Assembly (NCBI RefSeq): GCF_001194135.2 | Contig: NC_069000.1 | Span: 18,438,573 to 18,502,572, forward strand | Length of the DNA: 64,000 bases | From: Octopus bimaculoides | Lineage: Eukaryota | Direction: 5' to 3' | In this document: positions 37,701-40,700 of the stretch, piece by piece | Numbering within the stretch: position 1 is the stretch's first letter | How the letters are laid out: every line of letters starts with the position of its first letter | The notes under the pieces: model-generated | The model's database searches: none | Told to the model about the DNA's origin: nothing | The model's input: the letters and a program-made list of their open reading frames with translations, nothing else | Position numbers and translations under genes: made by a program

Positions 37701-40700
37701 TTCAGAAAATCAGGCATAAATCCATTAAATTTTCTATCCACAAAAATTGTTTCTTCTCAATTGTATGATTGAAAATAAATTTATCTTTTACATGTTTCAG
37801 TCATTAGACTGCAGCCATGCTGGGGCACTGCACTGAAGAATTTTTAGCTGAATGAACTGACCCCAGTACTTATTTTTTTCATGCCTGGTACTTATTCTAT
37901 CAGTCTCTTCTGTCAAACCACTAAGTTACGGGGGACATAAACACACTGACACCAGTTGTCAAGTGGTGGTGGAAGACAAACACAAAGACACATACTAAAA
38001 ATATATATATATATATGTATATATATATATATATATATATATATATATATACACACACACACACACACGATGGGCTTCTTTCAGTTTCCGTCTACCAAAT
38101 CCACTTACAAGGCTTTGGTCGGCCCGAGGCTATAAAAGATACTTGCTCAAGGTGCCCTGCAGTGGGACTGAAACTGGAACCATGTGGTTGGGAAGTAAGC
38201 GTCTTACCACAGAGCCACACCTGTGCCTATGACAATATTTGTAAACATATTACATAGCCATAAATTTGTAAACATATTACAGAGCCATAAATTTTGTTTG
38301 GTTTTACACAGACTAAGAAGGAAAGCAGGAAGCTCATTATCCTCAGATAACTCCATTAGAAGCATTCAATGGTCAGATGGTGGTCAGTGTATGTGGTGTT
38401 ACCTCATGCAACGTTTAAGTATATTACTTCAAAATAGGCACAAACCATTTAATGAGCTTCCACAGTTTTTATCCACTTTCACTAAAAAGGTTTGAAATAA
38501 CTCGAAGTTATGGTAGAAGACACTTAGCCATTGTGCCATGCACCAGGCTTGAACACTTGACACAAGATAACGAAGCGAACTTTTTAACTACACCGTCATG
38601 CCTACATCTATAATGTGCCCCCAAATACAAACTATTACAGATTGCTATAACTGAAACATCAACCAACCTGCTCAGTATCTTATAAGTCAACCCACATGCC
38701 AATAACAGTGAGTTATTTGATCATGTTGAAGTGAAATTTTCCTTAACAAAAAGAAAAAAAAAAACCCTATAGTAACACAACTCACCTTAAGACATTTACA
38801 CAATAAGAACTTTTGCCACTTACTATTTCTGGTAGTGGTACTCCAAGTTGTGTCCCTGACGGTGCCTGTACAGATAACAAGATACTTCCAGGAAAAACAC
38901 TACAAACATCTTCATAACTTACATAGGCCATCTTGGTATCTGTAAAAGGACATTGAAGTAGAGTTTGCTTTAATATTTTATAATAATAAGCTTTTCTGCT
39001 AAAGGCACAAGGCCTGAAACTTTGAGAGAAGGGTTTAGTCAATTACATCAACCCCAGTGCAGTTATTTCATCAACCCCGAAAGGATGTAAGGCAAAGTCG
39101 ACCATGGCGGAATTTGAACTCAGAATGTAAAGATGGAGGAAATGTCGCTAAGCATTTTGGCCAGAGTGCTAACAACTCTGCCAGCTCACCACCTTAATAA
39201 TAATGGTTTCAAACTTTATTCATTTGATAGTTCAAGACTCAGCAGAGGCTGAGTAAGTGGAAAACATTGGGATGCTACAATTTGCCTGGAGTAGATGCTT
39301 CCAGTACCATAAAGCAGTTTTTCTCACATTCATTATAGGTAGGGAGGGGAGCTCCGAAAGGGGTCTCAGGGAGTAGCATCCTTACCTTCCTGAGCTAGTT
39401 TGCCACCACATTCCTTAAAAATCGTGGTGGAGGCCTCAGTCTCGGGACCACTCATGTCTAGAATCTGAGCTTGGGGGTAAGCAAGGGCATGCTCCCAGAA
39501 AGCCTCATGATAGCAAAGGAGAATGGGCATCAGCCAGCCCAAAGTTTGGGGTGGGCTGCACCTGCCTACCTCAGTTGCTATGGCATTGAGGTAGATCCAC
39601 CCATCCCTGTTAACGAGGACAAAACCTGGATTTAAAACACTGGATGATGGTGATGATGATGGTTACTATATTGTAGCTCCTGTACAAACATACATATATA
39701 CACAAATCACTGAAGGAATCTCTATGATTGTTTGACCAGCTAGAAATATTGACCAAAATTTCTTCACAAAACACTTTACCATCGTGAAAAAAGAAATATA
39801 AAAAATTAACATGTTGGATAAAGTAATCTTGAAAATACAAAAAAATGGGATAGTCAAAACTGAAACATCTTTGACTGGATCTTCTTAATTAGGGCTGATT
39901 TGAGGCAATGCAAGAATCACCTCTGTCCTTCTCACACATCACCACTATTATAAAACACAACTTTTTTTGTGCCATGCCTACAGTCAATCAGCAACCATGA
40001 AGCTCCTTCCCTCTTATCACACATGCAACCAGCCCATGTTATTGGGCTAGTCTCTCTGATGCCAGCTGGTAAAGCCATTGCATATCTTCTCTCTCTTTCT
40101 TTTAGTTTCCCTGTTATCACCAAGTACTCAAGGCCTTTTTCTCTATGGTATCCAACAATAACAACAATCCACAAACACCCACCACACAAAACAATAACAT
40201 GTCCATCAGATTACCAAACAAAAAAAAACAAAAAAAAAAAAAAAAGATATTTACTGTTGGATGCTTCTTCAGTGATATTTTTAATACTTTGTTGTATACA
40301 GCTCTTATGAGAGTCAAGGGCTTTCTCCTGCTGGTCCAACATGGAAGTTTCACTCTTTAACATTAAAAGCCGATTGGATATTTCCTTGGAAGTGCAGCCT
40401 GGACCTGCTCCTCTGAGAAAGAGAGCGCGTATTAAATAAAACAGGACTAATATTAAGACTTCAATAGCACGACAGCATTATAACACTTTAGCATTTAAAC
40501 TGGACGTATACACCAGTCCTCAGTCAAGTCGTCCAACCCATGCTAGCATGGAAAGCGGACGTTAAACGATGATGATGATGATGATGATGATGTATCCAGC
40601 CCAAATCTTCTACTTGCTTTATGTTAAAACTGGCCATGTACTACAGTTTCTCACATCTACTCTACAGTGTCATTGCAAAAATAAACAATCACATCATTGA

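Follow-up and report, generated by a model that had tools for sequence, protein, structure and literature searches.

Minor (U12-type) introns are rare, and the accepted explanation is their conversion into U2-type (major) introns, a process whose description is said to go back to Burge, Padgett and Sharp in 1998. Here we analyze intron 3 of copy B, one of two E2F4/5-like genes encoded on the minus strand of a 64,000-nucleotide (nt) stretch of the Octopus bimaculoides genome (NC_069000.1, positions 18,438,573 to 18,502,572; hereafter the window, to which coordinates refer unless a locus is named). The intron lies between exon 3 (40412-40255) and exon 4 (38939-38824). Our preferred reading, to which we assign a probability of roughly two in three, is that it was formerly a U12 intron of the GT-AG subtype that was converted to the U2 type by a shift of both of its ends, leaving U12 fossils behind. 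Read this way, it is a natural example of a known evolutionary process that took an unusual route, and no new class of element.

Described class conversions likewise combine an ancestral U12 intron with derived U2 signals (Lin et al., 2010, PMC2831892; Moyer et al., 2020, PMC7367187; Larue and Roy, 2023, PMC10639083). They are biased toward U12 introns of the GT-AG subtype, and mutations of the 5' splice site activate nearby cryptic U2 sites experimentally (PMC2831892). The copy B intron probably began in the same subtype, the commonest one to convert. Unlike in classical conversion, its ends would have moved by -4 and -7 nt, with a change from phase 2 to phase 1 and the addition of a codon, and the event is limited to one tandem paralogue, copy A having kept its U12 intron. 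We regard it as a variant of class conversion rather than a plain member, because position and phase are not preserved. Survey pipelines count conversions at identical position and phase only (methods of PMC10639083), and shifted conversions are therefore invisible to such surveys. As for the gene family, 75% of the E2F genes in humans contain minor introns (Baumgartner et al., 2019, PMC6865273). Octopod copy A follows this pattern, keeping the same U12 intron as elephant shark E2F4, whereas copy B, a lineage-specific paralogue, appears to have left the minor-intron class.

A fitting route was proposed by Janice et al. (2012, PMC3291851), in which a cryptic neighboring site is activated and the original one is then switched off; no completed example was available then. 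The cuttlefish gene and copy A (U12), copy B of Octopus (both sets of sites visible) and copy B of Argonauta (only U2) fit this scheme stage by stage. Completion in Argonauta is deduced, and the alternatively spliced stage in between is a prediction here. Another related system is the U2/U12 twintron of Drosophila prospero (Scamborova et al., 2004, as presented in PMC3291851), which also has overlapping site sets with both products in frame. As far as it is described there, the U2 intron of prospero lies nested within its U12 counterpart, conservation across insects extends to both sets, and the two isoforms have been seen and are under developmental regulation. In copy B, by contrast, the sets are staggered and read from genomic sequence only, and the U12 set is not conserved. 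Finally, the AT...AA termini, the ATATC-type donor and the ancestral U12 position recall AT-AA U12 introns (Sheth et al., 2006, PMC1557818). Bona fide members of that type have a strong donor and branch site that are conserved between species, whereas donor position +6 and the branch motif of copy B are degenerate and variable.

Read on the minus strand, the intron's 5' end is GCA TCC AAC A/GTAAATATCTTTTT, which can also be written as AAC A/GTAA/ATATCTTTTT (slashes mark actual or potential splice junctions). The 3' end is TGTCCTTTTACAG/ATAC/CAA/G ATG GCC, with TCCTTTTACAG as the acceptor string of the GT-AG intron. A GT (40254-40253) stands 4 nt upstream of ATATCTTTT (40250-40242). On the acceptor side, an AG (38941-38940), an AC (38937-38936) and an AA (38934-38933) precede the ATG that starts at 38931, at distances of 3, 7 and 10 nt, respectively, from a branch-like A at 38943. 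The features at both ends are as follows.

40249-40254, minus strand: U2-type donor GTAAAT (ACA/GTAAAT), its GT, located 4 nt upstream of the former U12 junction, stemming from the ancestral xGT codon (AGT Ser or TGT Cys)
40242-40250, minus strand: putative fossil U12 5' splice site ATATCTTTT at the ancestral phase 2 junction (anchored alignment)
40230-40245, minus strand: T16 run after the fossil donor, varying in length and interruption pattern among Octopus species
38942-38950, minus strand: TCCTTTTAC, a branch-like motif, now the pyrimidine tract of the U2 acceptor (alignment, in silico splicing)
38940-38941, minus strand: AG of the U2-type acceptor (TTTTACAG/AT), specific to copy B, 7 nt upstream of the ancestral 3' junction
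38933-38939, minus strand: ATACCAA, former intron, exonic under GT-AG (A/AT ACC AAG, encoding N T K) and holding the alternative AC and AA (in silico splicing)

Six donor/acceptor combinations were spliced in silico. Three are open and in frame, namely GT-AG (40254..38940), giving NNTKMAYV, AT-AC (40250..38936), giving NSNKMAYV, and AT-AA (40250..38933), giving NSKMAYV; the three cross-combinations frameshift into stops. The first-pass annotation had reported the strings at both ends and exactly these three pairings, and all of this proved accurate. Under GT-AG, exon 3 ends by encoding KNITEEASN plus the first base of the next codon, while under the AT models it is 4 nt longer and extends to 40251. 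The predicted messenger RNA junctions are GCATCCAACA/ATACCAAGATGGCC for GT-AG (shorter form CCAACA/ATACCAAGATGG), CCAACAGTAA/CAAGATGGCC for AT-AC (also written CCAACAGTAA/CAAGATGG) and CCAACAGTAA/GATGGCCTAT for AT-AA, where exon 4 starts with GATGGCC. A further AG (38933-38932), 11 nt from the branch-like A, was rejected as it is out of frame with both donors.

The GT-AG intron has the make-up of a U2-type intron, with an in-frame GT (40254) and AG (end at 38940), a pyrimidine tract and a YAG acceptor. The acceptor TTTTACAG/A is a good one, and the 9-mer ACA/GTAAAT is also the annotated donor of the homologous oyster intron. On the U12 side, ATATCTTTT matches the U12 donor at 8/9 positions, with the mismatch at the normally invariant C at +6, and the T16 homopolymer renders positions +6 to +9 of this fossil donor prone to mutation. 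The motif TCCTTTTAC lacks the AA (RA core) of TCCTTRAY, which is expected about 10-15 nt from the 3' splice site, and does not qualify as a U12 branch site.

The ancestral state was examined in orthologue loci that were retrieved via annotated proteins, with the conserved Asn codon and the codons for L/M-A-Y-V serving as anchors. Since exon 3 and intron 3 of copy A lie past window position 1, the sequence of the latter was taken from the same chromosome (CM046620.1, locus L007; 100% identity over the overlap with the window). The homologous intron is in phase 2, five nt past the Asn codon, between N-x-x and LAYV, and has the following form in the genes compared.

Elephant shark E2F4: AG/ATATCCTTC ... 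TGTCTCCTTAAC-N9-AC/A, U12, AT-AC (the branch matches TCCTTAAC)
Lingula: AA/ATATCCTTTC ... GCCTTAAC...AC/A, U12, AT-AC
Chiton: CA/GTATCCTTG ... TTCTTAAC...AG/A, U12, GT-AG
Cuttlefish: CA/GTATCCTTTC ... TGTCTCCTTAAC...AG/A, U12, GT-AG
Copy A of O. bimaculoides, O. vulgaris and Argonauta: CA/GTATCCTTTAC ... TTCCTTCAC or TTCTTGAC ...AG/G, U12, GT-AG
Haliotis rufescens (locus L008, 5241-5710): AG/GTAAGT, U2, same position
Oyster, Crassostrea virginica (locus L009, 2750-2838): CA/GTAAAT, 81 nt, U2, same position
Nematostella (locus L010, 5051-5058): intron absent

The comparison shows that the bilaterian ancestor had a phase 2 U12 intron at the N-x-x/LAYV position. It likewise shows the ancestral cephalopod form to be CA/GTATCCTTT ... 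TCCTTAAC-N9-AG/R, a U12 intron of the GT-AG subtype. TATCCTT is present in all genuine orthologous or paralogous U12 donors examined (7/7). In Haliotis and oyster the same E2F4/5 intron has been converted in place to U2, independently and at least two times within the molluscs. The first-pass annotation had named a conserved U12 AT-AC intron just before LAYV in E2F genes. A U12 intron is indeed found there in elephant shark, Lingula, chiton, cuttlefish and octopod copy A, but the AT-AC class does not hold for the molluscs, as all U12-bearing molluscs sampled have the GT-AG subtype. The annotation had also pointed to copy A and other molluscs for comparison, where a GT-AG intron throughout, without any U12 signature, would have spoken against a conversion. 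The picture obtained is a mixed one, with U12 introns in chiton and cephalopods and converted U2 introns in Haliotis and oyster.

Copy B was compared across octopods by aligning the sequences at the ancestral junctions.

Copy A: AGT CA/GTATCCTTTACA ... TTTCCTTCACACTTTTTTCTCTAG/G TTG
O. bimaculoides copy B: AGT AA/ATATCTTTTTTT ... TCAATGTCCTTTTACAGATACCAA/G ATG
O. vulgaris and O. sinensis copy B: AGT AA/ATATCATTTTTT ... TCAATGTTCTTTTACAGATACCAA/G ATG
Argonauta copy B: AGT TA/GTGTTATTATAT ... ACTTTCCTCTATTGCAGGTACCAG/A ATG

In O. bimaculoides, ATATCTTTT differs from the cephalopod GTATCCTTT by changes at +1 (G>A) and +6 (C>T). The old donor site reads ATATCATTT in copy B of O. vulgaris and O. 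sinensis and GTGTTATTA in copy B of Argonauta, where G-T-x-T is retained. The branch region reads TTCTTTTAC and CTCTATTGC, respectively, the old branch A having become G in the latter. In Argonauta copy B both the U12 donor and the branch motif are thus gone, and the ancestral junction is unusable because it would read TA/A, a stop. The only open reading there joins the GT inside the AGT codon (-4) to the AG of TTGCAG (-7), which yields NSTRMAYV and equals the annotated protein. The same GT(-4)/AG(-7) pair is present in copy B of O. bimaculoides, O. vulgaris and O. sinensis, and the shifted sites are therefore common to both octopod lineages. Whereas GT(-4) is ancestral, lying within the AGT/TGT codon of Octopus copy A and cuttlefish, AG(-7) (CAG/RTACC) occurs in copy B of the three Octopus species and Argonauta and is absent in copy A and the outgroups. 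The exonised stretch in Argonauta is GTACCAG (S T R), with the Thr codon ACC kept. The old terminal AG together with the first exon base forms an Arg/Lys codon (AGA in Argonauta; AAG in Octopus, from the now mutated terminus), and the protein alignment shows a one-residue insertion specific to copy B. Gene models read NNTKMAYV in O. bimaculoides (XP_014780553.1, same in UniProt and EukProt), O. sinensis (RefSeq) and O. vulgaris (CAI9737685.1).

The first-pass annotation had suggested that both ends shifted and that the former branch region became a pyrimidine tract plus AG, a view supported by the U12 relatives, by Argonauta copy B and by the GT-AG models in three Octopus species. Its description of the AT donor as a fossil holds in so far as a putative fossil lies at the ancestral junction. 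The 'AT donor' is, however, on this reconstruction a later G>A mutation of a fossil GT and no surviving AT-AC donor, because the cephalopod ancestor had the GT-AG subtype and Argonauta copy B still has G at this position.

U12-like strings might also be coincidental in a T-rich intron, in which case there would be no relation between the intron of copy B and the U12 intron, the former having been, for instance, lost and regained, or slid. Taken alone, ATATCYTT is indeed not unusual in the AT-rich window (11 occurrences versus 9.1 expected), and the branch-like motif does not stand out from pyrimidine tracts: of the U12 branch consensus, TCCTTTTAC matches 5-6/8 positions without gaps, and the U2 pyrimidine tracts of Haliotis and oyster match 4-5/8. 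Because ATATCYTT occurs at chance frequency, the argument from rarity was dropped and positional homology was used instead. The first base of ATATCTTTT is the exact nucleotide where the paralogue and the outgroups start RTATCCTT, the paralogue and the sister lineage having GTATCCTTT there, and the G-T-x-T of Argonauta copy B stands at the same place. At the other end, the distance to the ancestral 3' junction is 9 nt both for the TAC of copy B and for the AAC in the TCCTTAAC of cuttlefish and elephant shark. The chance of such a placement is about 1e-4 per site, and a coincidental origin appears very improbable. TCCTTTTAC is a probable remnant of the U12 branch site TCCTTAAC.

Tandem copies were found in O. 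bimaculoides, O. vulgaris and Argonauta in the order B - A - kinesin. Cuttlefish has a single E2F4/5 gene beside kinesin, a neighbor that copy A retains. In a neighbor-joining tree of 12 proteins, octopod A and B are grouped apart from cuttlefish (85% bootstrap), and the clade of each copy holds both Octopus and Argonauta (100%). The tree, the tandem arrangement and the kinesin synteny therefore indicate a tandem duplication that probably took place in the octopod stem, before the Octopus/Argonauta split, with moderate tree support.

The staggered conversion may then have proceeded as follows. In the duplicate copy B, a new AG would have arisen 3 nt downstream of the old branch adenosine, where it would be unusable by the minor spliceosome because it lies only 3 nt past this adenosine. 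The old TCCTT branch motif and the T's would have been reused as a pyrimidine tract, with AG(-7) well placed for U2AF, and the GT in the preceding xGT codon would have become a U2 donor after a C>A change at +3 created GTAA. The net change would amount to +3 nt and one more residue (N-N-T-K-M versus N-S-x-L). Freed from selection by this takeover, the U12 signals would then have decayed, entirely in Argonauta and in part in Octopus (donor changes G>A at +1 and C>T or A at +6; AG>AA at the 3' end; TCC>TTC in the branch motif of O. vulgaris). With a redundant copy A present, copy B could plausibly pass through the intermediate stage with weak signals.

Between O. bimaculoides and O. vulgaris, intron sequences show about 5-7% mismatches along with indels. 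For the U12 motifs of copy B, 2/18 positions differ between O. bimaculoides and O. vulgaris/sinensis, both of them in the core (donor +6, T versus A; branch TCC versus TTC), an outcome that is about 40-fold likelier at the neutral rate than under ten-fold constraint. The 5' motif of copy A is invariant among Octopus, Argonauta and cuttlefish, and both copy A motifs are identical between the two Octopus species. Relaxed constraint on the U12 motifs of Octopus copy B is the best reading of this pattern. It bears on the suggestion, also made in the first-pass annotation, that both spliceosomes still compete. The intron of O. bimaculoides would then be a living dual-class (twintron-like) intron, a conversion intermediate in which GT-AG and AT-AA/AT-AC yield in-frame isoforms with either S or NT. 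In its favor, the intron has both sets of sites, each in frame, O. bimaculoides shows intermediate complementarity to U11/U6atac, and the U2 donor is a weak one. Since a stop was created at the old junction in Argonauta, shifted splicing must have existed there before that junction was lost or alongside it. The prospero and ZRSR2 twintrons (PMC3291851) are precedents, as are rare sites that both machineries splice (PMC10853781). Among Octopus species, however, the U12 set lacks conservation and the branch motif is degenerate, while cooperative recognition by U11/U12 works only when donor and branch site are both good (PMC3291851). An exact look-up of four full-length alternative-junction isoforms in a collection of 15 billion proteins returned none, which is a weak negative; all octopod matches of a 283-amino-acid (aa) query specific to copy B were genome-annotation proteins, and a 96-aa query centered on the junction gave 4 unrelated candidates without recovering protein P0001 and is uninformative. 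With no support from sequence constraint, ongoing competition seems unlikely. If it were true, one family would hold a three-stage series, with copy A unbegun, O. bimaculoides copy B intermediate and Argonauta copy B finished.

Several observations weigh against a conversion in Octopus, and most of them would suit an intron that is still an ordinary U12 intron, using the ancestral junctions through a rare AT-AA pairing (or AT-AC, with one extra codon). The GT-AG annotation would then be a pipeline artefact, and only the Argonauta lineage would have converted, via an AG that was already there but ignored at 3 nt from the branch point. AT-AA restores both ancestral junctions, the ancestral protein length (NSKMAYV versus NSQLAYV) and the 10-nt distance between branch and 3' splice site seen in chiton, cuttlefish and shark, and both terminal G's became A together. 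AT-AA U12 introns are real and conserved (8 in one survey, e.g., in RASGRP4), AT-AN introns splice experimentally, and non-canonical U12 introns are often mis-mapped by pipelines that prefer canonical dinucleotides (Sheth et al., 2006, PMC1557818); all support for GT-AG use in Octopus consists of gene models, the products of such pipelines. Besides the 8/9 donor match, the C>T change at +6 in O. bimaculoides keeps a G.U wobble with U11 and U6atac, with duplex energies intermediate between those of U12 donors and U2 introns. These energies, like those for U1, were computed with human small nuclear RNA (snRNA) sequences and are a rough guide only. By the same rough measure, the U1 duplex of the competing donor ACA/GTAAAT is weak (-1.9 kcal/mol versus -5.6 to -9.1 for the other donors of the gene). 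Moreover, both motif substitutions could fall on the O. vulgaris branch, and the timing of the duplication rests on 85% neighbor-joining support from 12 sequences.

What argues for conversion nonetheless is that TCCTTTTAC, without the TTAAC core, is no better than a U2 pyrimidine tract, and that donor +6 and branch TCC vary among Octopus species whereas copy A is invariant. The A at +6 in O. vulgaris and O. sinensis is a mismatch and brings the duplex energy of the fossil donor near zero, i.e., to background, by the same rough measure. The AC is just 7 nt from the branch-like A, outside the optimum of 11-13 nt (PMC3584512). Four annotation records from three species agree on GT-AG, with no alternative isoform recorded among them, and parsimony prefers a single origin of the shared GT(-4)/AG(-7) use. 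Retention of a functional U12 intron is doubtful on this evidence. Unconstrained U12:branch-site duplex energies did not separate U12 from U2 introns and were left unused.

If conversion by staggered ends is accepted, the locus provides a graded natural series, from an intact U12 intron through a U2 intron with readable fossils to full erasure, alongside the in-place conversions of Haliotis and oyster. It is a concrete candidate case of the cryptic-site route that was put forward in 2012. How introns cross a stage that is poorly recognized by both spliceosomes is still debated (PMC6865273), and the locus suggests two facilitating factors, redundancy after tandem duplication and reuse of a codon GT and of the old branch motif. 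It also separates E2F4/5 paralogues by their predicted dependence on the minor spliceosome, which, speculatively, could affect cell-cycle regulation if minor splicing is rate-limiting. The regulatory divergence that the first-pass annotation had proposed, with one paralogue escaping from rate-limiting minor splicing, is speculative as well.

The 3' end of the homologous intron in the cuttlefish Acanthosepion pharaonis (locus L005, about 64100-64117) shows a tandem acceptor, CACAAG/AAG/A. Of these two AGs, the annotated protein (NCQRLAYV) relies on the first, which is just 7 nt from the branch A of a perfect TCCTTAAC, while the second, at 10 nt, would give NCQLAYV of canonical length. Probably the model is mis-annotated here, or the site is a NAGNAG-type alternative at a U12 intron. 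An ancestral origin of the extra Arg/Lys before L/MAYV, found in both the cuttlefish model and copy B, was considered and rejected, because in both the codon consists of the exonised old terminal AG plus the first exon base, and the upstream AG of cuttlefish is only 7 nt from the branch A.

The two E2F4/5-like genes were delimited in the window by tblastn and translation, with a human E2F4 sequence serving as probe only. Copy B extends from about 58890 to 31600 on the minus strand, and copy A is represented in the window by exons 1 and 2 only.

58771-58890, minus strand: copy B exon 1, coding part (tblastn, translation, anchored alignment)
42333-42442, minus strand: copy B exon 2 (tblastn, translation, anchored alignment)
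40255-40412, minus strand: copy B exon 3 in the GT-AG model (tblastn, translation), matching RefSeq XP_014780553.1 exactly
38824-38939, minus strand: copy B exon 4 in the GT-AG model, followed by GTAAGT (tblastn, translation, in silico splicing)
18968-19087, minus strand: copy A exon 1, coding part (tblastn, translation, alignment)
1081-1190, minus strand: copy A exon 2 (tblastn, translation, alignment)
39003-39204, no strand assigned: interspersed repeat 1 in intron 3 of copy B (blastn against the window: 4 more copies, 69-75% identity)
39347-39655, no strand assigned: interspersed repeat 2 in the same intron (blastn: one copy at 48790-49108, 80% identity)

The further copies of repeat 1 are located at 23896-24087, 29216-29416, 30633-30804 and 33417-33608. 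Rfam and transfer RNA scans of the window and the intron gave no match. Neither repeat matches anything there, and the element resembling a short interspersed nuclear element has no counterpart in Rfam. Repeat insertions may account for the species differences in intron length (1.3 kilobases (kb) versus 2.4-2.8 kb). In intron 1 of copy B, three perfect ATATCCTT octamers lie within about 900 nt (57138-57145, 57272-57279 and 58044-58051, minus strand) in unrelated contexts, consistent with chance in an AT-rich intron.

Exon 3 of copy A is doubled in locus L007 (31136-31291 and 31502-31621, about 370 nt apart); the second copy abuts unresolved bases, and the doubling is probably an assembly artefact. 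The RefSeq protein of copy A in O. bimaculoides (311 aa) is without about 37 linker residues that are present in O. vulgaris (348 aa), possibly due to a skipped exon or a gap in the gene model. The two copies also differ in what they have kept: the ancestral GPG-x-LKKYQIH segment is kept in copy B and lost in copy A, while the U12 intron is kept in copy A.

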